Positions 8,200 to 63,306 of a stretch of 64,000 nt of DNA are shown piece after piece. Both the position numbers and the translations under genes were made by a program. The stretch's first letter is position 1; the number at the start of each line of letters is the position of its first letter. Under the pieces are notes generated by a model. The model was not told where the DNA came from. It did not search any database and saw only the letters and a program-made list of their open reading frames with translations. The stretch comes from Geosiphon pyriformis uo1 (Eukaryota; Fungi; Glomeromycota): NCBI GenBank assembly GCA_016748015.1, contig JAAOMT010000198.1, forward strand, positions 232,797 to 296,796. Direction: 5' to 3'.

Positions 8200-9955
8200 A
8201 TACTAAAATTTAATACAATTTAATAAATATGTGTGTCAAAAATTTAAGAGCTAAATTTTTAATTATTAATAATATTGTTTGTTATTTACAAATAGTAAAA
8301 ATAGTTTAAATTAAACGTATATTTTTTTAAATATTATTATTTCATATTAATAATATTTAATATAGATTGAAAAATATTATCAAAATGTTTTAATTATTAT
8401 TATGATTTCAAAAATTTCAACCGGTTATAACTTAAAACAAAAAGTTTTAACTTGTAATAAAAAATTAATTGCAATTTAATTACAATATTAAAAATAATAT
8501 TAATTACAGTATATATATGTAAATTAAAATAATAAATCAATTGGTTTTAATTAAAATTAATCATTATTTCAATTTTATAAAAAAAAACTTTTAAAAAAAT
8601 TTATTTAAAAAAACTAATATGTTTAAATAATAGTTAATTCAAAAAATTCAAATATTTTCAAAAACAATAAATTGTTAATAACAAAAAAAAGTTTATTTAT
8701 TAATTATTTTAATAATTGAATAATTTATTAATAAATACAAAAATAAATTAACTAAAATTTTTTTAATAAAAGTAAAAAAAAAATAAACAAATTAATTTAA
8801 CAAGTTTAATAAACAATATGAAAACATAATGGGCATTAAAGTTTTGTAAAAAATTTTAATTAATAAACAGATATTGTAATATTATTAGATATTAATTATT
8901 ATTATTAATTAAAAATTAAATTTCAAAAATATTAAAAAATATTTTATTTTTTATTTTTATTATTAAAATTGTTTGCTTATTCAATTTTTATTATTCAATT
9001 ATTTAATTTAATTATTCGATTATTTAATTATTTTTAAATTAACTATTATTATTAATTAATATTATATAATTGTACAATCTTTTAAATTTTATAATTATTA
9101 AAAATATTATTAAAATTTACTATATAGTATTTAATATTACAATTTTATATAATAACAATTTTTAATAAACTAAATAAATGGCTAATTAATTAATTTTTAA
9201 TACATAAAAATTTTATTTAAACTAAAATTTAATTATTCAAAATAACAATTTATAAAACTAATAAAAAATTTAAACCTAATATTAAAAAAAAAATTTAAAA
9301 TTTGAATTTTATAATAAAATAAAATTAATTGTAAATTTCTAAAATTTTGGATTTAATATTATGTTTTATAATTAAATATTATAAAAAAACAATTTTTTTT
9401 TGCTAATACATAACAATAAATTAAAAAAATTTATAAAAAAAAATTAAAACAAAACTAATTATTTTTATTAATAATATACAAAAATTAATACAAAAATTAA
9501 AAAATATATATAAATAAAATTTATATATTAATTAATAAAAATATTTTTTCATTTATTTAACAAATGTAATTCAACTATAATTTATTATAAATAAAATACT
9601 TTAAAATAGATATAATTTATATTTTAATTATTAATAAATATATTAAATAAAAAAATAAATTAAATAAAAGCAATAATATTATAATATTTTATTTATACTT
9701 AAAAACTAAAATAATAAATAATAAATAATAAAATTTTGTATATATATAATAAAAAATTTATATAATATATTATTTTTTAATATAATATATATAATAAAAA
9801 TTAATTCAATACTTTTAAAGTTATAAGTATTTGTTTTTTAAGCTTTATATTTGTTTTTAAACTGATTAAAATTTTTAAACATAATAATAATTAAATTATT
9901 AATATATTTAATTTAAATTTTTAAAAAACTAAAATAATTATTTAATAATTACAAT
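8200..9955. repeat. Hyper-AT (~90%) decayed repeat DNA, origin not readable
   Basis: Almost no G/C; the residual C/G lies mostly in AC/GT dinucleotides, as in spacers that do align to retroelements. Confidence 0.55.
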
Positions 9956-11173
9956 GCCAAGTAGCTTTGAACACATGTAAATTTGAGTCTTCATTGATTT
10001 GTTCTGATTTCAGGAATCGGTGCTAGATCGAACATTGCCACATTACTGATGTTATTTGGAATAAGAATTTGAAGGTAAATTGAGTTAAAGTTAAGGGTCA
10101 TTTAGGTGTCTCAGGCAATGAGCAAGCTGATGCACTTGCTAGAGCGGCAGCTTCCTTCTCTTGGTGGCTACTTTATAGGATTGGTGAGCATTTTTTAAGA
10201 GGTAGTGGTTCTGTGGTTTTTGGTAATTCAAGACACTTTGTTTGTAATGTTTTTCGGTCTGTTAACCAATTGCATTGGGAGATTAGCTCTGGTTCCCAGA
10301 TTGTGGTTGGTAGTTTACATGGTAATATTAATTAGTCCAGATCTTTTTTGGTGTGGCATTCCAATTCCCATATGGCTGCTGGTTCCACTAGTGCACAAAT
10401 GGCTGGCCTTTAGACTTACTTTATAAAGGCTCTGCACCACCGTCTTCCTGTGGCTATGTGTAAGCATTTGTATGATAGATGTTATCCCAGCATGATGTGT
10501 TTATTCTGTGGTGATGTCGAGATTTCTGATCACGTCTTTTCCTGCTCCTTTGATGCTGCTGGTTGTTTTCATTTGATGAATACTTTTGCAGTGACTTGGG
10601 AAACCTGTTCTGGTTTATCTTGTTCCTCTTTTTGTGTTTCACAGTTGTTATCTACTTGCACATCTGATGTTGTAACTGATGCAGCTTTGTGTAAGGGTTT
10701 CATTTTCAGAGATTGGTATCAGAAATCTGTTTCCACTTTTAAGGACCCTAAGATGGTGGCTATTAATGTGATGAACTTTGTGCATGATTTTTGTATTGCA
10801 TTCCAGGATGATATTTGGCTGGTCTGTGCAAAATACCATGCTGTTATGGAAAGAAATGGGCTGATCTTACATGATGGCTTCATTCCTGTCTCTGTTTCTG
10901 ATTTTTCTGAGCAGCTTTTGTCTGGTGTTGTTAGGTTGTTGAGTGTTGCTAAAGCGTTTGGCATCAGTTTTGGGTTTCATAAGTTCTGTTTGTTTTTCTC
11001 TGATACTTGTAATGGGGTTTTGGTTTATATAGGTGTCTAGTGTAGTTTTGACTGGTCTGAGTGGCTGGTTATATGTAGTAAGAGCATGATTCATGCCTAG
11101 TTTAGATCATTTGAATGATGTATTGCACTAGGTGGCGTTTGGACTTCACTCATTAAATATTAATAAAAAAAAA
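9956..11173 (+). mobile_element. LINE copy A, 5'-truncated (end of RNase H, C-terminal zinc finger, 3' UTR, poly(A))
   Basis: VKGHLGVSGNEQADALA, CLFCGDVEISDHVFSC, stop at 11040, family 3' UTR, poly(A); probable TSD AATTACAAT on both sides. Confidence 0.92.
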
Positions 11174-11915
11174 AATTACAATAAAAAAATTAAAAAAATT
11201 AACCAAATTCATTAAAATCCAATTTTTATAACCATAAATTGAACCAAAATAAACAAATTTTATAGTTTAAATTTTAAAAAAGCTAATTTAAAATCAAATA
11301 TCTTTTTAATAAAACCATTAAAAAAACAACAACTTTAACATAAATTATAAATTTAGTAAATTAATTAACAAATATAGTAAAAAACTTTAAAAAAACAACA
11401 AAAACAGTTTTATAAACTAAAACCAAATAATTTAAACTTTAATACTTGTAATAATATTAATATTTAAAAGTTTTTTATTAAATACAGCTTTTATACAAAA
11501 TATTAATTTTAATAATTGTTTTATTAAAAAATTTTTTGTACTTAAAAATAACAATAATAATATTTAAAAAAACTTAAAATATAAACTTTATATAAAAAAT
11601 GTTTAATATTTTTTATAATTAATTTTAAATTAATAAAACCATGTAAAAATTAAAAAACAGTTTAAATATAAAATAATTTGATTTTTGTTGTATTATTAAA
11701 TATTAAAATAAAGCTTATTTAATTAAAAAAAATTTTAATAACTTGTAACAATTTTTTAAATACTATTAAAAATTATTTTTTTAACAATAATAATAATTTT
11801 ATCATGTATATAATTATAAAATATAATATATATATAAATATATAAATTAATTTAATATTTAAAATAATAAAAAATTTAAAATTTAAAATTTAAAACAAAA
11901 AAAAATTATTATTAT

Positions 11916-11960
11916 TAAAAATATAGTATTTAAAAATATAGTATTTAAAAATTTAGTTTT
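11916..11960. repeat. 15-bp tandem repeat x3
   Basis: taaaaatatagtatt taaaaatatagtatt taaaaatttagtttt. Confidence 0.6.
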
Positions 11961-12197
11961 TAAAAAATAAATATAAAAAAATTAAAAAAGAAATATAATT
12001 AAAATAGTTTATTAACTTAAAAACATTATTATAAAAGCATTATTTTTAAGCAATATAAAATTTTTATTATTTGGTTAATATTATAACAAAAATAAATTTA
12101 AATAATAAATAATAATTTATTTAAAATTAAAACATAACATAAAAAATTAATAATATATATTTTGTTTAAAAAATATAAATAATAAAAAACTTGAAAA

Positions 12198-15100
12198 TTT
12201 TTTTTTTTTTTTATTCAATTTAACGAGTAAGATCCAAACACTACCTAGTACAATACATCATACAATTGATCTAAACTAAGTGTGAATCATGCATTTTTTA
12301 CATGTAACCAGTTACTCAAGCTAGTCAGGACAACACTAAATACTTATATACACTGAAACTATGTTACCTACATTTAAAAAGAATAAACAAGACTTACGAA
12401 ACCCAAAACTAACACCAAATGCATCCACAATATCCAATAACCTAACCATACCAGCCGAAAGCACTGAAGAAGAACCAGAGATTGAAACAAGAACAGAGCC
12501 ATCATGCAAAATTATGCCATCTTTTTCCATAACAGCCTGGTGTTTAGCACATATTAGCCAAACATCATTATGAAACACAAGACAAAACTCATGCATAAAG
12601 ACCACAATATTCTAAGCTGTAATTTCAGAGTCTTTAAAAACAGCAACAAATTCACAATACCACTCCTTGAAAACAAAGCCCTTATACAGAGCTGTACCAA
12701 CTCCAACATTGGAGACACAAGTAGAAAGCAACTGTAAAACATATAAAGAAGAGCAAGATAAAACCAAGCATGTCTCCCAAGCAGATGCATGAACTTCCAC
12801 CAACCGAACATGACCAGCAGCATTAAATAAGCAGAAAAACACATGGTCCGAGACCTCAACATTACCACAGAATAGACATATCACTCTAAGGTAACTCCTA
12901 TTATAAAGACACTTACATACAGCAACCAGAAGATGATAATACAATGCCTTTATAAAATATGTTTAGAAGCCAGCAGTCTGAGTATTAGTAAAACCAACAG
13001 CCAAATAAAAGTCTGGATGCCATACCAAAGAAGATCTAAACCAATTAACATTAGCACACAGGCTGTCTACCAAGACCCAGAAACCAGAACCAACCTTCCA
13101 GTGCACACAGTAAACTGATTGGAAAACACTGTAAACAAAATGCCTAAAATTACCAGACACTGCAATACCACCAGTTCTGAAAAAATGTTTATCAATCATG
13201 TGAGGAAGATGCATATCAGAGAGCACAGCAGCTCCAGTGAAAGCATTAGCATGCTCATTGTCTAAGACACCAGAGTGACCCTTAACTTTAACCCAATTAA
13301 CTACCAAATTTATGTGACAAATAACATTAGCAATGTGGTAATACTCAATCCAACACTGATTCCTGAAATCTGGATGGATTAGCATGAATTTGGATTTGCA
13401 TACATCCAAAGCAGCCTGGCTGTCTAAGAACAAGTTGATCGAACGAGAAAAAGAAACACAGTCAAAAGCCAGAGCAATGGCCTGCAACTTTGCCATAGTA
13501 GAAGAAACCAACCCAGACACCTCCACATCCAAACTCAAATTAATGTCCTCAAAAAAAACAGCAGCACCAGCTTTCATACCAGGAGTACCCAACCCACTTA
13601 GAAAACCATTCATAAACAAAGAAAGATGACCTGAATTAACCCTTAACAGATGACTATACACAACTTCAAACTTATGAGACTCAAGAACATTAGACAAACC
13701 AACATCTGGCAACAGAAGATTGCAAACAAAAGATGGTCCAAAACCATTTAGAAAGCAAACAGAAACATTAAACCAATAAGAAACTGGGTCCCAAGGGTCC
13801 AATTTCTTCTACTGCTTAAAAGTCCTCTATTCAAAAACAGAACTCATATGACTGCAAAGCTGCTTAACAAAAGCAATTCCATAATGCCAAAGTAAAGAAA
13901 CACATTTGTGAAAAGTGGGCTTATTAAGAATAACAGACATAGGAGTTCCATTTTGAAAATGAAAAGCATTAGTTACAAGACCATCTAAAGAAAGGTCACA
14001 TCCCAAAAAAATCCAAACAACACCAGCCAAAAAATTATCTGAAGGATTGACATTAATATGAGAAGGAAAAAGCAGAGAGTGGCAAAGGCACCAGCTAAGA
14101 ACCTGCAAATTATGTGATCTATGTGCAAACAAACAGCCCAAGATACCAACAGAATTGGCAAAACTAACAACAAAAGCTGACTTGTCTTCAGCCTGAACCT
14201 GTTTAAAAGACTTCAAACCATACAGAGAAGAATAGTAAATAGTATTATTGGGAAAGTTGAGTGGCAAGCCAGATTTAGATTTTAAACTCTTGCAAATCAT
14301 AGTGTCCCACTTTACATACACATTAGTAGAAACAAAACTGAACTAAGTCCTGTAGGCAACAATGGAGTGGAAAACCACTGACACCAAATATGAGAACTGT
14401 TTGTTAGAGACAGCCTTTCTCAACACAAGATTGGTGAAAAATCAGACATCCAAATGAGCTTTAGCCAAGCTAGGCTTTGACAAACTCTTAGTAAACAGGA
14501 AAATGCCCAGGTATTAATAAGGCTCCTTCTTCTTAGCTATCAAAATGGGCAAACCACTGATCAGCAAACAAAGGTCAGAAACTCTGCAATTAATGAGAAT
14601 GGCCACTGTCTTGTCATTATTGATTGAAATGTCATTGATTCGAAAAAATTTGCTAGCAATATTGAGAATATGTTGTGTAGCAGCCTGGCTGTTACCAATC
14701 CAAATTGTGTCATCAATGAAAGCACCTACAGCAAAAAAAGAAGTCAAATCAGCCCAAGATTCAAAGTAACCAGTTTTGGTTATGAAACAAGAGTCCAACC
14801 TGTATCCACAGATACTTTCTTGTCTTTTGACTTTACACAAAAGAGGATCATAAAATATATGCCAAAGAAAAAGAGAAAACACCTCCCCTTGGTCCAAACC
14901 ATCATGTATCTGATATTCATTGGTCAACCCAAAATCTGTCATAACTTTGTTAACCTGACCATTGTGAATGCCACCAAAAAACTGAATGAACTTGTCACAC
15001 ATCTTTATCTTAACTAAACTCTTCCTTAGATGCTTCCAACCAACAGAATCATAAGCCTTTCGCATGTTCTGCAAAACCAACTACAGCTTATGGTTCTTTT

Positions 15101-18100
15101 TCAAGGCATTTTCAATGACTGATTCAATAGCAAAAATAGAAGACTGTGTAGTTGTACTTTTTAAAACAAAAAAATTATTCCCTCTTAGAACATTAAACTT
15201 ACTGTATGCAAAAAAAATTCTGTTTAAAAAAATCTTAGATAGAATTTTGTGAGCTGTTTCAATCAAAGCAATAGAACAGGTGTTTGTGAAAACATCTTTC
15301 CACTTATACAATTTGGAGATCATTAACACTCAAATCTCCTTCCAAGGCCCAAGAACAGATTCACAATCTAAACAAAGATTCAAAAGCACCAAAAGCATAT
15401 CCAAAACTGGTCTGTCACAATGTTTCCATAATTTATTTGAAATACCAAAGAAACCAGCCACTTTCTTATTAGGCAGATTTGAGATGACATCAGACATCTT
15501 ATTGAAGTCAATTGAGCACATTACACCAGAAAAAGCATTATCAAAAACATACTCCAAAGACTAATATTGGTGATGTCATACACCAGGAACATTAGAAACC
15601 ACATTGTGCTTTCTAGTCCATTCTTCCATGATTACATCCACCTTGGTTCTAACCAAATTAAGTTCCAAAACCAATTTATTATTCATGACCAGATGATTCA
15701 AAGTCACTTTGCGGAAGGGACATTCCAGCACACTCTTAATAGTATAACACTTGTTCAATTCAAAACTTTCCATCCTTTTATTTATTGCTGACCTAATACT
15801 AAATTTCCTAACACATTCCACTTCTGACATTTTGGAGAATCAATACAACTTTCTAACCTTAAACAAAACTGACCAAATGGTGTCAAAGGGGGAACCTAAC
15901 AGAAAAAGAGACTTTACCACAGAAGCATTAACCAAATCTAAACTCTCCCACTTGTCAAGCAAGGACATAAATTCTCCAAAAAAATCCAAACAAAATGCTT
16001 TAACTAACTTCAACACTAAGAGCTCTAGCTTGTAAAACTTGGATGACTCCTTAACAAAAATGCAATCATAGTCCTTGAACTACTTCTTCTTAAAAACTGC
16101 CTCAGCTGACCAACATAACACTTTATAGAGAGCAACCCACATTGCATTCAAGTCTGAACACATTCCGGCCACAAAAAAATCATCATAGAACATAGCAGCA
16201 TTTGCTGCCATATTATTTTTAAATTTGGCCTATTTAATATTATCCACACCTTTGCAATTGTATTTTCAACAATCCTTATTTGCCTGTTTGCGAACAGAGT
16301 TTAATTAGACATCAAGTAAACCACCTAAACCCACCAATACTGAGACAGTCTGATAATTAGTATCAAAGTATTTCTTAATACCAAACACACCACAACCCAT
16401 CACTACATTGACCAAGTTTGAAGAAATAAGCACATAATCAATTATCTTAACTACACCTTAAGAATTGGACTAAGTTAGTACTTTCCACAAAAGCTTCTAC
16501 CCAAGGCATTAACCAAACCAAAATTCAGGCATTTCTTGAAACTTGCATACTTACGAGAACTGTTTTCATTAAAATTATCTCTGATAATGACAAAAGAAGA
16601 TTCATTAACAGTCTTTGCTATAAGAGAGTTGATATTACCAGCCTGAGAAAACCAAGCCACTGAAGAGACACCAGTGTACAGCCCCAAAATTGACACTGAA
16701 AGTTTATTTTTGAAAAGCAACTTGATAGACAGGATCTGACCAGGCACTTCTAAAATTTTGCACACATGTCTCACCAAAAAAGAATCCATGACAATCACAA
16801 CACCAGCATCCAGATAACCAGATTCTAAACCAGAAGTAAATACCTGTATACCATTAAATTTGTTAACAATCCAGGAACAAATCTTCTCTTTTAACTTTGA
16901 TTTCATGAAAATAGAAACTAAATTGTTCTTTTTCTTATGCCAACAAATGATATCATCCTGTTTTGCAGGATTGTTCATTCCTCTAACATTACAAGTTGCA
17001 ACTTTCCAGATTATATCACTCATTGAGAAAGAAGAGAGGTAGAAACCAAACCAGCATTGTTTATTTTAGCTGAAAGGCTCATAACTGTGATCGAAAGATT
17101 GTTTAATGTTTCTTCCATTTTTAAGATAACTGTAGAATCAAAAACCACCACTTCCACAATAGTCTTACCACCAGTAGCCACACCCAAACTCTCACTCATC
17201 ACTATATCCGCCCCTTGATTCTGTAATGAAAGGGTCACCAATGGCTGATGTCCAGGACTAAGCTGGAAAACCATTGGCTCAAGTGTGTCCAACCTCTTAG
17301 CCAGTATGTCAACACACTCTGCGAGACTGGTGAGACTGTGCTCAAGAGTGGCAAACCTATCATTCAATTCCAAAGACACCAGCAGAGTAGGCTTTATCTC
17401 CAAAAAGAAGCCAGCTTTCAACAAAATATTCTGACCAGAAGGAGAAGAAAAAGAAGACTCACCAGCAATTTGTGCTCATGAGACACCACCAAAAGAAACA
17501 GAATGAGCAACTGGAACCAAGCATTTGATGTATATGGCAGCCAGCCTACTTTTATCCAAGTTTGAAAGAGTTTTCCATAATGAAGCACCAGAAGAAACAT
17601 ACTTTTTCTCATTAACAGAACAGGCCAATAATGTGTGGCCCAATTTTCTACACCCAGCACACTTGGCTGAAACAAGATAAGACCAGTGCAGATTTGCCTC
17701 TCTTAGAACAGGTGTGGTCTTTATAATAGCATCCAATGACTCAGCAGAATCAAAACAAACAGTAGTACACTTGGTCCAGGCATAAGAAACCAGGTAACAG
17801 TCAATTATGCAAGTTTTTCCACCCACTAAAACAACATAATCCCAAATATCATGTGCATTGGTTTCCATTGGCAGAGTGTACAAAAAGACTTTGTAAACAT
17901 CTCATGCATCCCAAAAATCTTTGTCCACATCAGATCTAACAACATGCACTGTATCTTTCTCAATCAGGATAGATCATTTTGCCACAACCAAATCAGCATG
18001 ATTAACCTGTTTAAATTCAACCACCATTTTTTGTCACAGTCCTACCAACTGCATCTTGATCAACTTAATTAATCTGAATTCAGATAGCACAGCACGCACA

Positions 18101-18965
18101 GCCTTTGTTAATGTTCCAATTGGAATTTCCTTTAACACCACAGTCTGATTTAAATGTCCAGATGATTTCTTGAGATTGGTGTTTACTAAAATCTTTGCTT
18201 CTTCAGTCTTTTTTGAAGTCTGCACCAAACTCAATTCAGAAGTGAATGTCACTCTAATAATTCCAGCAAATTTTAAGAGGATAGAGGCTCTTCCAAAACC
18301 ATTGATCTTAGAAAATAACTTTCTGATTATCACAAGCTTTTTCTGAGCAGATTTTCCAACAACATTGTCCAAACCAATGTCCAAAGCAAAAGATTTTCTA
18401 ACAAAAACATTAACCAATTTTTTCAAAGGGGGGGGGAAAACCACAGGTTTGTTTAAAAAAATGTCATCACTATCATTGCCCAAAAAGTCAATCTTCCTTA
18501 GTGGCTTACTCAGTGCTTTTTTGGTTAAAATTTTTGAACTTTTAGGAATTTGTTCCAAGTTTCTACCAGCAAGAATGCCATCTTCTCTATAATCAATGCT
18601 AGTTTCTTCAACCAAAAATTTCTCCTTTATGTCTACACTATCTGATTCAGTAGTATCACCAGTTTCAGAACCCCAAGAATGACCACTTGACACCTTAGCA
18701 GTAGTGAATTTCCTATTACCAATATTATTCTCCAAAGCATTACCTCTCTTCTTTTTTCTAGACTCAGCAGACTTAACACCAATGTTGAAACCAGGCTCCA
18801 TAATAGATTTGTTCAGAATGACAATACTAGAGTTAATGGTGGCTTCGTAATCAAGCAAAAATGGTTTGGATTTAATAGACTGAATGATGAAAAAAAAAAA
18901 CTTCTTTTAAAAAATACTTTGGCTCTTTTTTGGGAATTTGGGATAAATGAGAGAAAAAAGTTTTT
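12198..18965 (-). mobile_element. LINE copy B, near full length, inactivated; ORF1 ~18800-17020, ORF2 17023-12336 (APE-RT-RNase H-CCHC)
   Basis: ORF1 zinc knuckle CAGCRKLGHTLLAC; ORF2 WKVATCNVRGMNNPAKQ (APE), LQNMRKAYDSVGW, GLDQGEVFS, AFIDDTIW (RT), WVKVKGHSGV (RNase H); poly(T) at 12198; many in-frame stops. Confidence 0.95.
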
Positions 18966-19305
18966 GAAAAATTAATAATGAATATATAAAAAATTATAAA
19001 AAAAACAATACAAAATATTGATAATAAGTATTAAAAAACATACTTAAAATATTAATAATAAATATTTAAAATATATATAAAAAAAACCAATTACTTATTA
19101 TAAAATATAATAAAAAATTGGCTTAATAAAAAATTTATATATATATTTAATTATATTAACTATTTATATATATTAAATTAATTAATTCAATTATAAACTT
19201 ACTTAATATGTTTTTTTTTAAAAACTAATAATTTAAATAATCAAATTTTAAATGATTAAATTTAAAACTTTAATTATATATTAATAATACCAATTATAAT
19301 TATAA

Positions 19306-20455: not shown

Positions 20456-20940
20456 AATATAATCAAAATAAATAAATTAATTGTATTTTTTAGTAAACTA
20501 TTTTTGAATAAAATATTAAATTATATAAATAAAAATATGTAAAAATTCTAAAACATAATAAAATTTGTTATTATTAAATTATATATGTTAATTTTTAATT
20601 TTTATTAATATTTTTTAATTTGTTAAAATTTTTTATATTTAATTTAATTAAATAGTTAAATTATATTATATTTTATTATTGTAATTAAACTAATTATTAT
20701 TTTTTTATTATTGGTTAATTTTGTTAATTAAATACAATAATATAATTTTTTTTATATGATCTTAATAATAATTTTTATAGTATATATTGTAATTTTTGTA
20801 TTAAAAAATATAAAAATGCTTTAATTTTTATTTAATTAGCTTGATTTTTAAAATTAAATAACTTAATAAGCCAATTAAACAAGATTTTATGCAAAAATAT
20901 GATTTGTTTTGCTTTTAGAATTAATAATAATTTAATATAT

Positions 20941-29561: not shown

Positions 29562-29590
29562 AATATTTATATATTTATTATTAAAAAAAT

Positions 29591-39457: not shown

Positions 39458-40579
<1,122 letters not shown>

Positions 40580-41750: not shown

Positions 41751-41888
41751 ACTGATTCAAAGATATCAAAATGAATTAAAAATAAATATGCTGAATTTAA
41801 AGAACGAACAAAAATTAGAATTTTATTAAATCTGATCATTTTTGTCTAAAAAGATTTTCAATATCTACATAGCAAATAAGCTATTAAT

Positions 41889-42724: not shown

Positions 42725-42771
<47 letters not shown>

Positions 42772-47494: not shown

Positions 47495-47877
47495 AGGTTT
47501 AAAATCACATACGAGATGAAGATCTCGAAAACTTTATTCATCCAACCAAATAACGAAGAATTGTGAAGATATAATGGTAAAGATGAAAGGTTGGGAAATC
47601 TTTTTTGTAAATATACTTGTCGCTTTGCTAGAGAACTAGCAAATTGTAAACAATAAACCTCGATTTCCTTTTTCAAGGGTGCATATGATGATTGGAATTG
47701 AAGTGACAACTGTTTCTCGAAAATTTGTTACTAATATTATAAACTTCAGAAGATTGATCGATGTAAACCAAGCAATAAATAAGTATTTTTACCTTGTTTG
47801 ATTAGTTGGATTTTTTCTTTTACAGATCATACTAATAACGTATTATCAGAACGATCAAATATTGACTACTTCCATAA

Positions 47878-51290: not shown

Positions 51291-51294
51291 ACAA

Positions 51295-54200
51295 GAAATA
51301 ATTGTTTTGTTTTTAAAACTGCCAAAGATTTGTTAAAAAACATTATATTTGGTAACACAATTAGTGATTAATTTTGGCTCCAATTTTGTTAAATAGTTGT
51401 TCAACTTTAATTGAATTTAAAGATTTTATGGGACAAGTTCTTTCTCTTTTTTAACAACTATTATAAAATTTTACATACTATTAAATATTTTTTTGCATAT
51501 GGAATCAGAAATAATGTTTTATTGTTTTTTGAATTATTTTTTTCTAAATGTGCTAACAATAAATCTGTATATATGTTGTAAAAGATGGTTTTTTTCTTGT
51601 TTTCTTGAACTAATTTGAGTGAATTTGTTGGGTTTCTGTAATTTTGGTAATAAATTTTGTTGTAATAAATAAAATATTGTTTTGTTTGGTTTTGTAATTA
51701 GTGTTTTTTAACTGAAGACCAATTTTCTGGTATATTAAGAGTTTTCAAATAGTTTTTAATGTTGTTATAGTTTTTGGGATTTATTGTTTTATTATTAATT
51801 TGTTTATTAAGTTAGTTAGGTGTTAATATAAATTCTAATCTTATCTTATTTTGAAAAAGCTATTAATGTTTGTGTGTAATTTTCCAGATTTATGGTAAAC
51901 AATATATTTGTAATTAGTTAAGAAGTCAGTCTATTAAAATTGTTTTATATTGAGTTCCAATTTTTTTGTTAAGCTATTTAAGACCAATATTATTAGTTAT
52001 AATATCAAATTTTTTTCTATATTGCAAATATTATTGAAAGTGTTTTAGGACCCAAATAACAGCTGTTGCTTCTAGTTTAGTAAAATCATATTTGGTTTTA
52101 GTAAATTTAAGTGTTTTACTGGCATAAACAATAACTTGTTCATTGTTATTATTATTTAACTATAATAAAATAGCACTAAATATTGTGTATAAAACATTGG
52201 TAACTAAGTAGAACTGTCTGCTAAAGTCTAAATAAGCAAAAACTGGAACTGTTGTTAATTTTATTTTAAAAGTTTTAAACACTTTTTGTTGTTCATTGGC
52301 TTATTAATATAACATGTTTTTGTTAATTAAGTAGTTAAAAAATTTTGTAATTTTGGAGAATTTTTTAATGAATTTTTAATAGTAAGAGACTAATCTAATA
52401 AATTCTCTTAATTTGTAGTATTTTGAAGAATATGAAAATTTTTAACAGCATTAATTGTTCTTGAATTTGGTTGAACTCTATCTTTACTAACAATGTGTTC
52501 TAAAAAGATTAGACTTGTTTTTTTAAAGTAACATTTCTTAATGTTTAGCTTTAATCCTGTTTTTTGTAATTATTGAAATACTTTTTACAAATAGATAAGA
52601 TAAGCTTTAAAAATTGGAAAATAAATATTAGTATTATCAAGATAGACAATTATTAATTGCTATAAAAATTCTTTATAAACAACATTTATTAGTTGCTAAA
52701 ATGTTGCTGGTGTATTGCAAAGTCTAAAAAACATAACATTAAATTTGTAATTTCTTTTTTGTGTAGTAAATGTCATTTTAAAACAGTCTTTTAGATCTAT
52801 TTCAACTTGCCAGTATTTGCTTTTTAAGTTTAAAGTTGAAAAGAACTTGGCTTTTTCTAGAACATTTAGTATGTTATCAATTTTTAATAATAGATAAACA
52901 TTTCCTATTGTAACATTATTTAGTTGACAATAGTCTACACAAAATCTGATTTTTTTATTTTTCTTTTTAACAAGAACTACTGGTAAAACCTATAAACTTC
53001 TTGATGGTTGAATTAATCTATTATTAAACATTTTCTGAACTTTTTTTCTAATAAATTGGTAGTTAGCAGATGAGATTTTATAAGCTTATTGGCATTTTGG
53101 TAAAGCATTCTTAGTATGGATTTAATGTTAAATAATATTCATTTTTCCCAAATTATTGTTATTTTTAACAAATATATCAGCATATTCAGTAATTAACTGT
53201 TTTAATTGTTTTTGTTGTTAGAATTTTAAGAGATTTATGTTGATTTGAGAAAGTTTTTCTTTAATAATATGATAGTTTTTAGTTGTTAGAATGATGTTTG
53301 AATTTAAAAGTAGAGTATATTTCACAATTTCAATAAAATTAGAGACAATTTAAGAAGTTTTATTTTGGAAAATTTTGTTATGTATTATTCTAATTTTTAG
53401 TTTATTTAATAAAATGATAAAATATTTATTGAAATTGTAAAAAATAACTTGGAATTTTTTCATTTTTTTGAAATATAAACATTTGGAATTAAGATTTTAT
53501 GTTTTGTGCAGATTTGTTCATTTGATTCAAAAATTTGCTATGTAGTAGTAAGTTTTGAACAGATATAAATTTCGTAATATTGTTATGATTAAAACTCATA
53601 GTTTTTATTAGTTATTATATGTATTAGTCATTGATATTATATAATTAGTCACTTTATTTTTAGATAGTAATCATTAATCTGATCAATAATCTGATTATTG
53701 ACTACTTTTAATAGCTATATAAGCAATGAATCTTTTAGATGTAATAAAACATATAATAATTAATTAAAAATAAATAAAATAATAAATATTATTTTAATTT
53801 TTCTTCTATTGCTTATTTTTTTTTCTACTTTTAAGTATCTAAACATATTAGGATAAAAAATTACTTATTGGCATTTACCTACCCTTTTTCTAACTTGTAT
53901 AATTATAGTATTTAAAGAATATTGAATAAAATGTAACTGAAAAATACATCTAATACTTGATATTAAATTCTAAAAGTGCTAATGTGAGACATAAAATTAT
54001 ACAGTACAGACTATTTCTTTACTTTTAGATTCTCTAGTTATCTTTTGAAAAAAATTAGCAACTGAGATATTTTATGAAATTAATCTTGCACATTGAATCT
54101 ATACTTATTTAATTTGCTCTTTAAAATTGAATTCTTTTTGATTAATTCCATTACCTTACAATTCTGTTTTCTCTTGTTATCTGTTAACTTGTTACTTCAA

Positions 54201-54590
54201 TCCATAACAATATTTTCTAAAAAGTAAAATAACAATTGGTTGTAAAAGTCAAAAAATCTGGTGAAATTTATTTTGTATATTAAAAGCTATATTAACTGAA
54301 ACTGTGAATTGTTGAATTAAACCAAAATCTTGGATTCTTCTTTTACTTTTGCTTAATTGTTTTCTGTTGTTGACTGGTTGTAAACCTGAAATGTTAATTA
54401 AGAATAAGTAAATTACTTGAACAATTTTTTCAGGATGCTTAATTTTGAATGATTTTTCAGTTTTATTTTGTAACATAATAGTAATATCTTTAATGTATTC
54501 TGTATTTATAACTCCTTTTCTAATATTGATTTTTTTGCTTGCCAATAATAATCAAAAAGCAATTTGGACTATTGTTTCTGGTAGTAAGTA
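51295..54590 (-). mobile_element. Ty3/Gypsy LTR retrotransposon pol relic: dUTPase - linker - RT - RNase H
   Basis: RT FFSTLNLKSKYWQV..MTFTT..YKFNVMF..LCNTPATF, IVYLDNTNI; RNase H AYLDFSRQFYLVTN, VYASKTL..KLEATAVIWVLKHF; dUTPase-like ORF 54249-54545. Confidence 0.9.
53581..54209. mobile_element. Solo LTR (629 bp) inserted in the Gypsy pol relic
   Basis: Termini TGTTATG...CATAACA with 4-bp TSD ATAT (53577-53580 and 54210-54213); removing it joins the dUTPase-side and RT-side sequence. Confidence 0.85.
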
Positions 54591-54619
54591 GAATGACCAA
54601 TTTTATACCAGTTATTTTA

Positions 54620-54719
54620 TGTAGTTACTTTGTAGTAAATATCAACTCTTTCTTAAATATTGTTTGTTTGAAAGCTTACTAAAAATGTGTAGTTACTTTG
54701 TAATAAAAATTAACTCTTT
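54620..54719. repeat. Two 32-bp direct repeats separated by 36 bp
   Basis: tgtagttactttgtagtaaatatcaactcttt (54620-54651) and tgtagttactttgtaataaaaattaactcttt (54688-54719). Confidence 0.8.
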
Positions 54720-55405
54720 TACAAAAATTTTATCTATAAATTACTCTAATAATTATATTAAAAAAATAAAAAAAAAATAAAAAAATGTAAAAGAATTGAA
54801 ATTTTGTTAAGAGAATTGTTTTCTATTTAAGTTTAGAGTCACTAATAAATTACTAAAATTGGTAGCTAATTAATTTCAAAATATTAGTTGTGTTTTGAAA
54901 AATATTAAGTGTAAATATTTTAAGAATTTGTTTTTAAAGTATTTTATTTTTAAATTGTATTAATGAAGATAAATCTAAAAGTAAGATACATTTTCTCAAA
55001 AAAAAAAAGCTCTTTTTTTATACAACTTGTTATAGTATTAGTTTATAAACTTAAACTTTTTCTTTATTATAATTTCGATAAATTAAAAATATATTTTGAC
55101 AAACTACAAATTGTTTTTACCAACTATAAATAATTTCAGTAAATTATTATAATATTTTACAAATTTCTACAAATTTTGGCAATTTCTTAAATATTATAGA
55201 GTTTGGAATATTGTATAATCTAATTATTACAATTGTGTATCATATAAATTGAATTATTAATTGAATCATGCTTTTTGATAATTTGGTTAAATAATAAGTA
55301 ATAATTGAAATGATAATAATATATGCTAATTAATAATAGAAATTATAAAAGTAATTTCATGTTAACTACTAACTAAAATTTTATTAGTAATATTAAAGAA
55401 CATAA

Positions 55406-58400
55406 TTTTGAAAAAAAAAAATTATTTTTTCTTGATTTTTTTCCTTTAATATTTTTTAACTCAATAATTTTTTTGTTATGGATTTGAAAGCTGCTTTAAA
55501 TGGTAGTATATTTAAAAAAAAAAGTATTTAAAAGAGCTTTTTATAGTCCTGCTAGTGGCTTTTTTTTCAAAAAAAATGAATTGTTTTTGATAATATTAAG
55601 TATTCTAGTAATAAGAAAGACATTTTTTTGGCCAAGTCTAATTCTGATAATAGTATATTTTCGAATATAAATAGTAAGTCTAATGAAGGTAAAATTAATA
55701 ATTCCATAACTGATATTGATAATAATTCTCGTCTTGATTTAGTTGTAACAATTCTTAAAGCCAAAAAAATAATGTCTGATGTAATTTATGATTTTTTTTT
55801 TGGTTTTTTTGATTTCAATATGAATAAAAATATTGGTTTATTTTTATTTTTTTCAATATTCTTTTGGACAAAAAATGAATTAATTCCAAAATAGTAAAAA
55901 CTTTAGTTAAAATTGCCATTAAAAAATTCGTTGCTTTGAATATCAATCTATTAATGATAAAAAACAAATTAGCAATGACTAAAACTCAAGCAATTAGAAA
56001 AATTTTTTTATTAATCAATGGTTTTGAGAAAGTTACTACTTTCTCAAAATTTGAAAAGATTATCAAATTAATATTTACATCAGAAAAAAGCATAAAAAAG
56101 ACTTTATTATTGGCTAAGAAAAAGAAATTATTATAAACAATAATATAAAAAGACAAAAAATTAGGTCAAATTGGACTGTAATAATCAAAAAAAATTCCAT
56201 AAACATGTCAAAAAAAATTATTATCACCACAATATTTAAATATGACTAAATTGTATCAATTAAATTGTGATTTATTAAACTATAATAGAAAACTGTAGTA
56301 AAATTTGCCAAATTAAATTAAATTAATTAATTAGTATTTTAATAATCATTTTTAATTAGTAAAAACTCAATATGTATAGCCAAAGTTATAAAAGACCATA
56401 ATACTTGAATGTCTAAAAATTAATTCAAAGCATTTTTGTTTATTCTTCTCATAGAAACAACTGCTTATGATTTTGGTAATCTATTAAAAAAAATTGGTAA
56501 AAAAACTTGTATTATTAATTAGTTATTTAATACTAATAGTAGGATTTGCTGTGTTGTGCTGTGGTTGGTTTTAAATCTAATAAGTAACTAGAATCTGTCT
56601 TTTGTACAAAGCTTATTTTGGATAATATTAAGTTTTTTTGGACTAAATTAAATTTGATTCAGTATAAAAAATGTAGGTATTTTGAATATTTTTTTCTTAA
56701 ATATAACTTATTTGGTTTCCTTGTTTCAGTTCAAAAAAAAATTATAAAAAGTTTGTTTTAGATTAAAATTATCTTCAATTTGCTCATTTTTATGCAAAAA
56801 AAATGTGACTATTTCCTGATTTGCTGCTTTTGATAACAAATTTTGGGTTTAAATAATGTTTCTAATAGTTAGTTTTTATTAATATTTGTCTAGTTTTTTC
56901 TCTAAATTTTCTCTCTTTAATACTTTACTTCTAGACAATAAGATCTCTGATTTTCAAAATATGTTTGTAATTGGTGATTGGTTGGCTTCTTTAAAATGTT
57001 TTTTGGAGCTCTTAGCTAACCAAGTGTCCAATATTATGTATAGATTTAGTAATATGAACTTGGTGCTATTGGTTTTATTTTTTTCTACTTTTATTTTAGT
57101 TAATTCAATAATTATGAATTTGAACTTGATTTTAGATATAGTTTTAAATAACTCATAAGTATTATTCTCCCCTTTTTCTTTAGTAAATGCTAAAGCTTTA
57201 GTATTGGATCCAAGTAGTTCTAAGATTTTGACTATTAAAGTAGGCAGTCTGGAATTGAAAATAGTAGCTCTTGAGGTTTTTGTTAACTTAATTCTAAAAA
57301 AATTAGATCAGTTGTATACTGGCTCAAATTTTTTGGTGTATCTTTTATTTTAATGAATAAGTTTATTTGAAAAATAATAACATATAATGTCAAAAATATA
57401 AACAATTTGGCAAAACAAAAAAACATTGTTTAATAATATATAAATTTTAAGAATATTATATTTATTATAATTAAAACTAAACTTAAGTTAAGTACCAAGT
57501 CATAAATAAATATTAAATTTAGTGGGATCCAAATTTTCACATCTGGTTTGAAAAATAACTCTTTCAGAACTGGTATGACTATTATTATGAACAATTTTTT
57601 GGCTTGTTATATTACAAATATGAAAAAAAATTCTAATCAAATAATTTTAGTTTGTTTTTTGTTCAAGAGCAAATTGTCAGTTGTGATTTTGGGTTTGTAT
57701 ATTAGAACATCAATTAGAACTAGATTTTTGTAAGCTTTTAATATTAACTTTTTTATTTTTAAAACAAATATTTCCAGCTTATTTATAATTTTAAGTGGTA
57801 ACTTTAATAAAAATAGTTCTAAAAAATGTGTAAGTCTAAACAAGTGTCTAAATATGAGTTTGGTAAATTTTTTAGATAAACATTTTTTGGTTAAATGTTT
57901 CACTTGGCACAATTCAAAAGGAGTTGAAAAAATTATTAATTACATTTTTTTGAGTGAAAATCTGCTGTCAGCTGTTATAACTTGTAATATTAATTCTGTT
58001 TTTAATTTTTTTAATATTGATTACAAGGCAGTCTTAATTCAAATTGGTTTAAAAGACTTATTAGATGTCCATCTAAACATTGCTCACAAACAAGTCAATA
58101 AAAATTGCTAGAAATTTAAAACAAAGATACAAATAATGCCAAATAAACAAGATTTAAGAATTGTTTTTCTGTTAAGCTTTCAATAATACAGAATGAGTTT
58201 TCAAAAGCTAAAAATCTTTAGAATTTAAATACAATATGAAGAGTTTTGAGTGAAATAATAATAAATACAGCTAATAAAGTATTTTTTAAATATTGGTATA
58301 GTGAATTTAATTATTTAAAAACAAACAGTTTTCAAAATTTCACAGGCTAAAATTATTGGTTTTTAAGTTGTCTAAGATGTTAAGCTTAGACAATGGACTA

Positions 58401-61400
58401 GAATTTGATTATTTTATTAAAATATAATTATCTGTTAATAATGTAAAATCTTTTAAGATTAGCAGCTTAATTTAAAATAGTACAAATTTTGTGAATATAA
58501 TTAAACATTTGTTAATAATTAAAAAAAATTACTATAAATCCAAGTACTATAAGTTTGAAACAGCTAAAAATATAGTTATTAGAAATATAATTGAGAAATA
58601 CATGGAAAATTTCAGTTCCAATAAGGATAATATAATTAAAAGTATCTTAAAATAACTATTTTAGAAAATGGTTTTAAATTATCTAGTAATTAAGAAAAAA
58701 TTAGTTGTAAAGCCAAATGAGATAAAGATTAGAATTGATATAATCATAGAAGGTTAAACAAAAAAGCATAATATTTTTTTAGTTTTGTCTGATCTATAAA
58801 TTAGTTAATATATGCTCTTAGAACATATAAGTAAAGACATTTTTTTGACATAATAAAGACCATCAGCTTAAAAGATTTGACTTTAGTAATTGGTAGTTTG
58901 CCTAATAACAAAGCTGCTAACTTGTTTAACATAACTAATAAACTTTAAAAACATTGTAATATACAGTAGTAAATTGTTTATTGAATCTATTAAACAATTG
59001 TCTAATTCTTGGTAACATTCCAGTTTTTTGAAAGAAAATATGAGTTTTAATAATTCCCAAACCATATAATTAGAATAATATTTTGACAAACATAAAATCC
59101 ATAGCTTTAATTGAAATAGCTAAAAAAATTCTGTTAAAAATTTTGTCAAATTGTATTTTATCTGTTTATAGCAAGTTTAATGTTTTCTATAATAACAATT
59201 TCTCAATATTAAAGAGTACTTTAACTCAATTTCTAGTGTTTGCTGTTAGTTTTATTGTAAAAAATGCTTTAAAAAAAGACCAAAAGCTATAATTGGTTCT
59301 ACAAAACATGCATAAAGCTTATAATTTAGTTAGATAGCACTATTTAAAAGCTTGATTAAAATATATTAAAATATATAATAGATTTATTTGATTTTTTTAG
59401 TAATATATACAAAAACAGAGTTAATAAAATAATAACAGATTTTGGTTTTTCAAATAGTTATAAAATACATAATAGATTAGATTAAAATAAAGTCTTTTTA
59501 TTATTTTTTTGGAAAAAATTTTACAATCTTTTATTATATAAGGTCAAGAAACAAAAATACTTGTGTGGATATTAAATTAATGCCAGTTTGATGGTTAAGA
59601 TAAACAGAATAGAAATTAATAAGAGAAAAACTTTTTTTTTATGACAGGTGTTTTTGTAGATAATACTATTTAAGTAAAAAATAGTCAAGCTTTAATGCAA
59701 TACATTTTGGATCTGATTAATCAATGGTTTAAAATTAATAATATTTGCATTAACAATAAAAAAACAGTTGCAATTCTCATAAACCAAAAAGTTGTAGTTG
59801 TTTTGTTACATATTAGTAACTAATTTATTTTTATTGTAAAATATAGAAAATCTTACAGATATCTTAGAATTTTTTTATCAACAAATGATATGTCTAAGCC
59901 AAGTTTTGCCAAAACACATTCTAATATTAGATTTTTCTCAAACTTGGTATTCAAAAAGACTTTATTAAATAAGCAATTTTCATACTTAGTTTTAGCAGTT
60001 TTGCAATCTATAATTAGTTACTAAATACAATTCAGTTTTGTGTCCAAAAGTGTATGTCAAAAGTAAAATGTTATGATTAGAAAAAAGCTTAAATCTAAGA
60101 CTAATCTGCTAAAAAACTTTTTCAATAAGACTCTGTATTATTTATTCTTGTATAAACTAAAATTTTTTAAGCAGATATAAACAAAAGGCAAAATGACTTT
60201 ATTAATCTGGTTTTTTAATACAGTGGGTATTTTTGGTTATCTATTTATATATTAGTTTTTAAATTTACAAATTGTAAGTTGAATACCAAAAAACTCACTA
60301 CAATTTTTTGTCAAGTTGAAAATCAATTCTGCAAATAATTTTTTAACAGGTTTAATAAAAATACTTTTGGACAACAATATGTTTTTGGCAAATAAATTAC
60401 TTTGTGTATTTTGTTTTCTTGGTCACTTTTTAATGTTTGATATTTTAGATAGTTTATATTATTTCAATATAATTCAATCTTTAAAGCAACTTGATATTGC
60501 TTTTGGTAATTAATTTTTGAACAAATATGGTTCAGTTATGGATTGAAAAACTTTTTATTAATAAAAAAAATTAAGTTTAAAAGATTTAGTAGCAGCATGG
60601 TTTGTGAAAACTTCAATCTACATAAATAATCTTTCTATTAATATTATGAAATACAGTTTTAACTCTCAAAAAAATTTTTGGATGTTTAAAAATATTTACA
60701 TAAATTATAAACAGGAAAGATTAATATGTATACTAATAGTTTATTAAGTAATTTAAGTACAGTAAATATAACAAATAGAACAGCAGCATATTTTTTTGAA
60801 GTTGAGATGGGTTTAAGTGTTAAAGTTTCTGGTTTGTTGTCATTAACAATAGCTAAATTACAAGTTATTGCTTTAACTTTGGAATATGTTCTCTCTTTTT
60901 GCTTAGTGGTTTTGCATATAAACAGCCAAGCCACCATAGATATATACATATTTAAGCTTGTGTTTTATGTGTCTGATTTTAGAAACAAATACTGAGTTAA
61001 AAAGTAATATGTAACCAACTTAATAAAATCTAAAAACACTTCTGTTACATAAGTAAAAGTTAAAAGCTATTTAGAGAATATTAACAATAACAAAATCAAT
61101 ATTTTTGTAGGTGATATAATACAACTTTGTATTTTTTTACTTACTGGCATACATAAAAGATTTATCTTAACAGATGGTTCAATTGTTTTAGGCAATACTT
61201 ACTATTTTGTTTGCAATATCTATTAAATAGTTAGTTGGGCTCAATAAGAAACAGATTCAGGTATTAGAATTTTGAAAGAGTTTTTTATTTAAAACATTGA
61301 TTGGTATTGTATTACTTCAGTTTGGCATCCTAATTTTTATATGCTTTCTGGCTTTACCAACAAACTTTCAATAGTTTTTCACACATATTTAATAAAAACA

Positions 61401-62152
61401 GTACATAAGAAACTGCCAACTATAATCAAAAAAAAATTGTTTGATAAGAAGTATTTAAGTGTATTGTGTTTATTTTGTGGTAATATTGAGTTGTCTAATT
61501 ATGTTTTTACTTGTTCAAAAGATGTTTTATTATATTCTAAAATTTTGTTAAATTATGCTAAGTTGTAAAAGTCTTTGGTAGAAGCTTGTTTTTTATTAAT
61601 CTTTTTAATATTATATATTCTTTTTTTAGAAGTGTTTAATATTAATATTTATGAGATTTTGTCCAAAGAGTTTGTTTTTAGAGATTAAATTAATGAAGCA
61701 GTTTTAAGGCTTAAGAATAAAAAAAAGGCTTTAATAATAATAACTAACTTTATTCAATATTTTGCTAATATATATTATAGTAGAATATGGAATTTTAGGT
61801 CAAAATATAGGGCTAATATGAAGAAAAATGGCTTAATTAAAAACATAAAAATAGTACCTAAAGTATATGGTGATCTATCTAGCTTTTTTTTAGCAGGAGT
61901 GGTTTATTTACTTGGAATTTTTGAATCTTTTGCTGTTAATTTTGGATTATACAAGACTTGTTTTTTTTTTCAAGGTTAAATAATAGTTTAGAAGTCAATA
62001 TGAATATATAATGTAATCTTGATTGGCTTAAATGACTGATTATATATAATAAGCACATGGGCCATATTTAGTTTAAATTACTTAGTCTGCTTTTATATAT
62101 TAAATAATAATTAGATTATATTTGTTAATAAAAATAATAATAATAATAATAA
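55406..62152 (+). mobile_element. LINE copy F, near full length, heavily eroded; ORF1 ~55478-57356, ORF2 57353-62011
   Basis: MDLKAA at the ORF1 start; TNIKSIALIEIAKKIL, LQNMHKAYN, VFVDNTI, MYTNSLL, VLCLFCGNIELSNYVFTC; 3' UTR and (TAA)n tail. Confidence 0.93.
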
Positions 62153-63306
62153 ATATAAATTTTTACAAAACAACATAAAAATTCAATAATTTTTTACAAA
62201 TATTTATGCTTACTATATATATAAAAACAATTTAAAAAATTTACTTTATTTTAATAAAAATACAAAACACTAAAATATTTTTGTTGTATAATTATTTTTA
62301 AATTACAATAAATAGTTTTTTGTATATTATTTTTATAATATAAATAAAAATCATATGTAAATTAGAATATTATATTAAAAAAATACAAATTCGATCAATA
62401 TTTTTAATTATAGTTCTATTAATAATCTTAATATTAAGTATTTTTAAACACTATTATATTATTAGTTTTAACAAATTTTTTTAAACAAAAACAAAAAGCA
62501 ACAAAGCTAAAAAGCTATATTTCTAACAAGTTTATTAACATATTTATTATCAAAAATGGCTGAATATTAATATTATTATAAATATTAAAATTTAAATTAT
62601 TTTATTTATAACCATTTTTTTTGGTTTAAATAAATTATTTTTAAGTTATTTACTGTATTTAAAATTATTATAAACTGTTTACCAGTTTAATTTTATATGA
62701 TTTAATCTATTATGTTTGTTTTATTATATTTAATAAAATTTTTAATTTTAATTTTAATTTTTTAAAAATTCAAATATTAACATTAATTTGTTTAATAATA
62801 TAAGTTTTTATTATTGGCTAATAAAACCAAAATTAAAAAACTGGTTTTTTTTTTGGAAGCTTAAATCAAAACTTTTAATAAAGTAATAACTAATTTGTAT
62901 AAAGATTTTGCTAAAGCTAAAGAAAATTTTGGAATATACATGTTAAATAAAAATAATATAAATGCTAAAAATAAATTTTCTGTAAATAACATTTAAATAT
63001 ATGATTGCCCTTAATTCTAATATTAAATCTAACCAAACTTTAAATAAGTGAATTTGTTTTAAATAGCAAGAATTTGAATTATTTATATGTAAAATGGGTG
63101 CATTGGAATTGTTCTTAAATTCTCATTTAACATAATATTAAGTTCAAGTGGCAGGTCACGCATGATCCATGTCTATAATGTAACTAGAATAGCGATATTC
63201 ATATTTTATGTAAGAAAAAAACCGTTTCCAAATGTATCAAGTATCGAATTTGCAACTTCAGACTATTTTCACCTTAGGCGTCTGATTTGTCACTAGAACT
63301 AAAATT

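Follow-up and report, generated by a model that had tools for sequence, protein, structure and literature searches.

In the early-diverging fungus Geosiphon pyriformis, retrotransposon copies decay almost purely by C>T changes, most of which fall outside CpG and are favoured by a pyrimidine on the 5' side of the cytosine. Here, we analysed a stretch of 64,000 nucleotides of this genome (C725:232797-296796), hereafter referred to as the window; the assembly to which it belongs has 128.3 Mb in 792 contigs. A transposon cluster, which includes several copies of long interspersed nuclear elements (LINEs), occupies positions 8200-36874 and 50880-63000 of the window, and the DNA at 1-8200 and 36959-49400 is genic and essentially unique. 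Fragments of open reading frames from the LINE of the window had matches solely to proteins that bear the name Geosiphon pyriformis. An earlier note, written from the letters of the window alone, had rightly placed it in an early-diverging fungus and had proposed that its repeats are mutated from C to T by a genome-defence system. The decay observed there is real and extends beyond the window. For its cause, we tentatively favour a slow, chromatin- or methylation-linked deamination of cytosines that is confined to silenced repeats.

The spectrum of changes was obtained from the family of LINE copy D, whose relatives elsewhere in the genome (at least 20) were drawn from 6484 first-look candidates. 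In all, 21 family-D copies were aligned. Their tree is star-like with long tips, and changes on the terminal branches were assigned by per-column parsimony, from per-column counts. The terminal branches carry 4008 C>T changes (0.0795 per C), as compared with 785 T>C changes (0.012 per T) and 194 transversions of all kinds. CpG sites contribute 963 of the 4008 C>T changes (24%), so that 76% are non-CpG, and at non-CpG cytosines C>T exceeds transversions by more than 40 to 1. The number of C>T changes per site is 0.213 at NCG, 0.093 at TCH, 0.069 at CCH, 0.050 at ACH and 0.046 at GCH, which corresponds to relative rates of about 4x for CpG, about 1.9x for TpC, about 1.4x for CpC and 1x for ApC and GpC. 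TpCpG is not faster than the other CpG sites, with 0.201 at TCG versus 0.227, 0.213 and 0.218 at ACG, CCG and GCG, respectively. When the ancestral state was taken from other clades only, the values were 0.145 for TCH, 0.122 for CCH, 0.086 for ACH, 0.085 for GCH and 0.344 for NCG. The odds ratio of TCH to ACH is then 1.8, and TCG (0.355) lies within the range of the other NCG sites (0.320-0.365). The tree-based, leave-one-out and outgroup-ascertained context counts agree with one another. A spectrum of private (singleton) substitutions, which showed no context effect, was discarded because it accepted only changes with a single carrier against a majority of 70%, a rule that leaves out fast sites.

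A much older family, that of LINE copy F, and a LINE relic of 13% guanine plus cytosine (GC) at 19294-20814 show the same order of contexts, which supports the favoured explanation. In the four F copies, C is still present in one, two, three or four copies at 130, 137, 102 and 71 C/T or G/A columns, respectively, and just 32 columns have anything besides transitions. This flat distribution of the retained C indicates that each copy decayed on its own, starting from an ancestor that was richer in GC. In this family, C was lost at a fraction of 0.73 at TCH, 0.68 at CCH, 0.50 at ACH, 0.44 at GCH and 0.90 at CpG; with LINE copy C as the outgroup for the ancestral state, the fractions are 0.69, 0.65, 0.57 and 0.54 for the four non-CpG contexts in the same order. 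The 3' neighbour has almost no effect (NCA 0.58, NCC 0.64, NCT 0.57), and purine-flanked cytosines are also heavily mutated (ACA 0.47, GCA 0.42). In the relic, C was retained at a fraction of 0.22 in RCH versus 0.12 in YCH. The effect of the 5' neighbour, with a YpC:RpC odds ratio of 1.7, holds up under three methods and in both families, but it is modest, at 1.4-1.9x. The dependence of non-CpG C>T changes on the 5' base, which the earlier note had predicted, was thus found with the TCH to ACH odds ratio given above, while the large TpC:ApC ratio that it had expected at non-CpG sites turned out to be only about 1.8-1.9.

The two strands are affected equally, and the changes are overwhelmingly C>T and G>A on both of them, as had been described. 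Private changes on the sense strand amount to 0.0136 per C for C>T and 0.0142 per G for G>A, and the strands are also equal within each copy. All 21 family-D copies carry a load of mutated C/G of 5-11%. Among these copies, same-strand runs are no longer than expected by chance (run test, mean z -0.26), CC>TT doublets show no excess over expectation, and no positional clustering was seen in 19 of the 21, which are Poisson-like; the outliers are two copies named L028 and L022. This pattern fits a site-by-site process that acts on double-stranded DNA, and not a processive single-strand deaminase, cDNA editing, ultraviolet (UV) damage or repeat-induced point mutation (RIP) in a heavy, episodic form. 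Editing of LINE cDNA or RNA is ruled out by the equal sense-strand rates of C>T and G>A. UV damage, a candidate for a fungus that lives on the soil surface, is ruled out by the lack of a CC>TT excess and by the heavy mutation of purine-flanked cytosines.

The features of the window are as follows. Ratios of observed to expected dinucleotides (O/E) are given for complementary pairs, such as TC/GA, where applicable.
1563-7500: control region, with two expressed unique genes, 15 RNA-defined introns and the unique intergenic stretch 4314-5700
8200-9960: AT-rich spacer 1, GC 8%, 3 CpG (O/E 1.0), TC/GA O/E 0.52, AC/GT 1.25, GpC 3.1
9964-11177, plus strand: CpG-depleted LINE 3' fragment, GC 38%, CpG O/E 0.21, sharing 69-71% identity with copies A and D at their 3' ends
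11200-12190: AT-rich spacer 2, GC 8.5%, no CpG, TC/GA O/E 0.22, AC/GT 1.44
12195-18900, minus strand: LINE copy A, a lineage of its own, GC 36%, CpG O/E 0.09, CA/TG 1.34, transition-blind identity to copy D 0.85
19294-20814, minus strand: spacer that is the decayed 3' part of a LINE, GC 13%, transition-blind BLAST score of 950 bits versus a decoy maximum of 114
20925-27905, minus strand: LINE copy C, a lineage of its own and nearest to copy F (transition-blind identity 0.87), GC 34%, CpG O/E 0.10
27939-29640, minus strand: young 5'-truncated LINE 3' fragment that retains CpG (O/E 0.74), GC 37%
29647-36874, minus strand: LINE copy D (APE-RT-RNase H), its relatives, at least 20, at 83-90% identity
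36875-36958: assembly gap, situated where copy D has its 5' end; the full-length relatives of this copy begin at query position 193-196, that is, at about 36680 of the window
50880-55444: remnants of further retroelements, GC 19-21%, among them a 2.2-kb element (51380-53585)
55445-62181, plus strand: heavily decayed LINE copy F, GC 21%, three relatives at 79-80% identity, all of about 20% GC
62200-63000: AT-rich spacer 4, GC 12%, TC/GA O/E 0.44, AC/GT 1.16, weak similarity to F-type LINEs (150 bits versus a decoy maximum of 114)
The two sides of the assembly gap were analysed separately, and every result lies wholly on one side.

Copy D was compared with Pfam domains, of which RNase_H matched above the cut-off, RVT_1 below it, and Exo_endo_phos weakly and also below it. 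Copies A, C and F and the 3' fragments 9964-11177 and 27939-29640 are all related to copy D. They had been taken for one LINE family; however, A, C, D and F have raw identities of 0.52-0.63 and transition-blind (purine/pyrimidine) identities of 0.77-0.87 between each other and are separate lineages. Within LINE families, the transition-blind identity is 0.98-1.00, and transitions make up 88-96% of the mismatches.

The composition of the copies follows their stage of decay. CpG has an O/E of 0.04-0.35 in the copies versus 0.84-1.06 in genes. In copies A and C, which have a GC content of 34-36%, the O/E of CpG is 0.09-0.10 and that of CA/TG is 1.29-1.34, and TpG/CpA are therefore still abundant in eroded copies, as had been claimed. 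The region of copy F (50880-62200) has a GC content of 21%, with O/E values of 0.06 for CpG, 0.83 for TC/GA, 1.04 for AC/GT and 1.48 for GpC. The four AT-rich spacers have a GC content of 8-13%, TC/GA O/E of 0.22-0.54, AC/GT of 1.16-1.44 and GpC of about 3; three of them hold 0, 0 and 1 CpG. When the four are pooled, 321 AC/GT dinucleotides are found versus 119 TC/GA. The dinucleotides that had been counted by hand in the earlier note were reproduced exactly for 20481-20820 (17 AC+GT, 4 TC+GA, no CG), and the same skew was found at 9121-9460 (16, 4 and none) and 11175-11450 (24, 5 and none). The idea that the spacers are eroded LINEs holds for 19294-20814, whose score is far above the decoys, while 8200-9960 and 11200-12190 are barely above them. 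Judged by sequence, a LINE origin is proven for no spacer other than 19294-20814, and 8200-9960 is best described as end-stage DNA.

Outside the window, the GC content of the 1.5-kb flanks of 20 family-D loci is bimodal, with 77 of 238 windows at 5-15% and 98 of 238 at 35-45%. The AT-rich class of these flanks, an independent sample, is skewed in the same way as the spacers, with TC/GA O/E of 0.56-0.59, AC/GT of 1.24-1.28, GpC of 1.9-2.6 and CpG of 0.07-0.34. Young family-D copies (L010-L029, first and last 1500 bases) typically sit directly in DNA of 5-15% GC, with very sharp GC boundaries, and new LINE insertions seem to land in old graveyards of decayed repeats.

The rates of private changes give an equilibrium GC content of about 13%, and a forward simulation gives 11-17%; the observed blocks have 7-13% GC. 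With a context-free T>C rate, the simulation reproduces the dinucleotide skew of the F stage (21% GC) and, for the end stage, its direction. The simulated end stage is less extreme than the real one, which suggests that the T>C rate is overestimated. A simulation with context-specific T>C rates derived by parsimony was rejected, as it gave the wrong end-state dinucleotides; a C retained where most copies are mutated is misread by parsimony as T>C.

The decay is restricted to repeats as far as the composition of unique DNA can tell. In the two expressed unique genes at 1500-7500, 15 introns were defined by transcript contigs of a public run. From full introns to intron cores, they have a GC content of 0.24-0.26, with O/E values of 0.54-0.71 for CpG, 1.13-1.23 for TC/GA and 0.68-0.79 for AC/GT. 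The unique intergenic stretch 4314-5700 has a GC content of 0.31 and O/E values of 1.06, 1.25 and 0.75, respectively. The neighbouring genes keep both CpG (O/E 0.84-0.97) and TC/GA (1.04-1.16), as had been stated, and their AC/GT is 0.80-0.85. At third codon positions, which were counted exon by exon without a joined coding sequence and with two ambiguous exons skipped, the GC content is 0.30, and the values of C/(C+T) after A, C, G and T are 0.29, 0.33, 0.19 and 0.30, respectively; no YpC deficit was found in these 599 codons. Furthermore, the unique loci of DNA methyltransferase (DNMT) genes have a CpG O/E of 0.86-0.90 in GC-normal windows. By composition, and in this small control sample, introns and unique intergenic DNA do not carry the signature, nor do third codon positions. 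These weakly constrained genic sites are far from the repeat equilibrium and have the opposite skew, which supports a specificity for the repeat compartment. In Ambispora, Diversispora and Funneliformis, the orthologous loci, which serve as a composition control only, are gene-dense, with no transposon graveyards, and have a non-coding GC content of 20-30%. At the Funneliformis locus, windows of 10-15% GC, a small sample, have TC/GA of 1.10 and AC/GT of 0.89; AT-richness as such does not, therefore, give the skew.

A search of the genome for enzymes that could act on cytosine, which the earlier note had called for, was productive for methyltransferases. A canonical DNMT1, with an RFD, two BAH domains and a methyltransferase domain, is located at C371:420.0-423.7 kb. 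Other DNMT domains that lack RFD or BAH are found on C657, at 788 kb and 820 kb, and at C646:684-686 kb and C692:422 kb, and one with a sub-threshold BAH match upstream is found at C702:1326200-1327926. The two cytosine-5 methyltransferase domains of C657 (788280-789372 and 820713-821336) lie 32 kb apart. In a Protein Data Bank (PDB) search, the C657 exon matched DNMT1, CMT and bacterial Dcm about equally, and the C702 pieces matched nothing; the architecture of the latter, a methyltransferase with a weak BAH-like match upstream, is reminiscent of DIM-2. Both the C657 and C702 loci are GC-normal and CpG-normal and are probably live genes. No RID was identified among the DNMT-domain genes by domain and PDB matches, made without full gene models or phylogeny. 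As for deaminases, APOBEC_N (PF08210) had no match in the genome, and neither had NAD1 (PF18778), OTT_1508_deam (PF14441) or DddA-like (PF14428), although these last three also found nothing in control genomes, so that their absence is not shown. A search for the UDG family gave two weak exon-sized matches, and uracil repair is therefore not obviously missing.

These results can be accounted for as follows. Retrotransposon copies would be silenced after insertion, and their cytosines would then steadily turn into thymine by deamination, one site at a time on both strands and with no need of a homologous partner. The order would be CpG, TpC, CpC and finally ApC and GpC, with back-mutations and transversions 7-50 times rarer. 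Copies would slide in this manner from about 41% GC through about 20% to a floor of about 8-13%, with the surviving C and G mostly in ApC/GpT and GpC. Of this, the data establish the spectrum, its symmetry between the strands, its even spread along and among the copies and, as judged by composition, its absence from silent and non-coding sites of genes. We infer that the changes are caused by the state of the repeats, in their chromatin or their methylation. One option is the deamination of 5-methylcytosine, in which DNMT1 would maintain methylation at CpG and another DNMT-domain gene would do so at other sites; another would be a poor repair of deaminated cytosine in heterochromatin. The canonical DNMT1, the further DNMT domains and the CpG methylation of transposons that has been documented in two other Glomeromycota, Rhizophagus and Gigaspora (10.1101/2021.03.30.436303; 10.64898/2026.01.14.699541), speak for this explanation, as do the predicted equilibrium, the AT-rich flanks outside the window and the different composition of unique DNA. 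Several points weigh against it. As a neutral control, unique DNA is represented by a small sample (introns, 1.27 kb; intergenic DNA, 1.4 kb; 599 codons), which measures composition, not a polarised rate. To our knowledge, neither a methyltransferase nor a spontaneous process has been documented with a 5'-pyrimidine bias. Relative to transversions, C>T changes are about 2-3 times as frequent in family F, the older one, as in family D, and the process is therefore not strictly clock-like. Finally, only CpG was assayed for methylation in Rhizophagus and Gigaspora, yet three quarters of the C>T changes in Geosiphon are non-CpG.

Methylation-driven decay of CpG, as known from vertebrates, plants and basidiomycetes, resembles what we found in that CpG is the fastest context and is depleted in repeats and not in genes, TpG/CpA are in excess, and a DNMT1 is present. 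However, the 24% share of CpG among the C>T changes of Geosiphon means that such decay does not explain the bulk of the excess. RIP, as seen in Neurospora crassa and other Pezizomycotina, also mutates C:G to T:A on both strands of transposons, creates stop codons and leaves AT-rich blocks beside GC-normal genes, and in Geosiphon these changes are likewise confined to repeats according to the small compositional control. The context in Geosiphon is different, as it consists of the 5' base and CpG and not of a 3' A, and instead of a depletion of CpA/TpG with an enrichment of TpA, CA/TG has an O/E of 1.05-1.34 at all stages, that is, an over-representation, and TA has an O/E below 1. Nor is there the heavy, episodic and strand-coordinated mutation of RIP; loads are uniform, runs are at chance level, 19 of the 21 copies are Poisson-like, the decay goes down to about 10% GC, no RID was identified, and the host is glomeromycotan. 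The C>T hypermutation of transposons in Pucciniomycotina (Microbotryum, Puccinia) takes place in a non-ascomycete and is influenced by a 5' T, as it is here. In that group, only TpCpG is a hotspot and partial matches to it are not (PMC3318451), whereas in Geosiphon TCG is not faster and the effect of a 5' T or C is seen at non-CpG sites. Both CpA-directed RIP of the Neurospora type and the TpCpG type of Pucciniomycotina are therefore ruled out by sequence context.

An active RIP-like system of another kind, distinct from RID-dependent RIP, in which duplicated DNA is recognised by homology or chromatin at some point of the life cycle and its cytosines are deaminated by an enzyme, DNMT-like or not, that prefers CpG and YpC, seems unlikely to us. 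The nearly pure C>T changes on both strands, their confinement to repeats by composition, the AT-rich blocks like those of RIP-affected ascomycetes, the methyltransferase genes of C657 and C702 and the higher ratio of C>T to transversions in the older family speak for such a system. Against it stand the undepleted CpA/TpG and the near lack of a 3'-neighbour effect, the absence of strand-coordinated runs or clusters, and loads that are neither variable nor episodic. Moreover, the decay proceeds to about 10% GC, although the copies within a family are already just 80% alike, and no RID came to light, the C657 exon being about equally close to DNMT1, CMT and bacterial Dcm. RIP signatures have also not been reported in arbuscular mycorrhizal (AM) fungi or Mucoromycotina (10.1101/2021.03.30.436303; PMC12543289). 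As to the claim of a defence that actively senses repeats, nothing points to it, given the uniform and strand-equal loads and the lack of runs and clusters, and it is also undercut by a decay that goes far beyond the point at which copies still resemble each other. We doubt the wider proposal that Glomeromycota, or at least Geosiphon, possess an active, chromatin- or homology-guided deamination restricted to repeats (CpG > YpC > RpC), a RIP analogue outside Dikarya with different machinery, possibly an unclassified DNMT-domain gene.

It is quite unlikely that a neutral C>T bias with this context acts on the whole genome alike, with genes, introns and promoters being GC-richer through selection or biased gene conversion. 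Mutation is universally AT-biased, the genomes of Glomeromycota are AT-rich, the measured equilibrium of 11-17% GC equals the GC content of old junk DNA, and the unique-DNA control is a small sample that may be constrained. However, intron cores, with 24% GC, TC/GA of 1.23 and AC/GT of 0.68, are the reverse of the end state of the repeats, the CpG O/E of unique intergenic DNA is 1.06, and third codon positions keep 30% GC with much the same C/(C+T) after A, T and C. The 20-30% non-coding GC of three related AM fungi and the TC/GA of 1.10 in the AT-rich windows of Funneliformis also speak against a genome-wide bias. A cytidine deaminase, of the AID/APOBEC type or specific for double-stranded DNA, that edits transposon DNA or replication intermediates with a preference for TpC and CpC is highly improbable. 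A preference for a pyrimidine at the -1 position is a hallmark of APOBEC-type and DddA-type enzymes, and APOBEC3-type signatures (TpC/CpC) consist, as the changes in Geosiphon almost entirely do, of C>T. Here, however, the preference is only 1.4-1.9x, ApCpA and GpCpA are heavily mutated too (0.42-0.47 in family F), and the strand asymmetry expected of cDNA editing, a sense-strand bias and strand-coordinated runs or clusters are all missing. No APOBEC-like gene was detected in the genome, and the three other deaminase searches, likewise without a match, had no working positive control.

Several other observations concern the retroelements themselves. The sense strand of family D is rich in T and G (majority states T 35%, G 26%, A 21%, C 17%). 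LINE sense strands are normally A-rich, and this composition is unusual; it does not come from mutation after insertion, because such mutation is strand-symmetric. The outlier L028 (C658:441416-446393) has 113 private substitutions, of which just 36 are C>T, and its changes are strongly clustered (z 5.5); it may be a recombinant or partly misaligned copy. The 2.2-kb element at 51380-53585 has at least 35 copies at 75-76% identity. The peptide LNLKSKYW, which had been explained as a mutated form of LDLKSGYW, is encoded within this multi-copy element (52810-52833, minus strand), but LDLKSGYW is found nowhere in the window. The peptide resembles the xDLxSGYxQ motif of reverse transcriptases of long terminal repeat retrotransposons. 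If it is a motif of this type, 51380-53585 may be a Gypsy-type fragment and not a LINE or an element with ORF1 only.

In the unique part of the window, the transcripts at 1563-7500 define 11 CT..AC introns in a minus-strand gene and 4 introns in a highly expressed plus-strand gene. The intron at 6552-6635 of the latter is of the GC..AG type, and one T>C difference between transcript and genome is found at 3401. About 5 tandem copies of an 84-bp unit (85-89% identity) are located at 43230-43670, within an open reading frame of 327 amino acids (43019-44002), whose final 20 residues match the start of the C-terminal domain of lariat-debranching enzyme. Short AT-rich stretches (12-20% GC) at 40960-41760 and 45114-45278 lie among the unique genes and have dozens of weak matches throughout the genome (67-77% identity); they are probably old decayed repeats between genes.

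RIP-like mutation of repeats is regarded as essentially a trait of ascomycetes. Neither in Gigaspora nor in Mucoromycotina were RIP signatures reported to be detected (10.1101/2021.03.30.436303; PMC12543289), and AM fungi are said to lack them (10.1101/2021.03.30.436303). In a kingdom-wide survey of 2025, AT signatures enriched in repeats, with a preference for CpA, were almost confined to ascomycetes (PMC12543289). Among the papers that we searched, none was found to describe a decay by non-CpG C>T changes, or a bias towards YpC, in Glomeromycota. In Geosiphon, the transposons of a glomeromycotan are destroyed almost purely by C>T changes, mostly non-CpG, and blocks of 5-15% GC fill about one in three of the windows that were sampled next to LINE copies. 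Irrespective of its mechanism, this decay distorts Kimura-type estimates of transposon age and hides old repeats from annotation. It also raises the testable question of whether glomeromycotan heterochromatin has non-CpG cytosine methylation or a deficit in repair. If the process were active, it would represent an independent invention of mutational genome defence.

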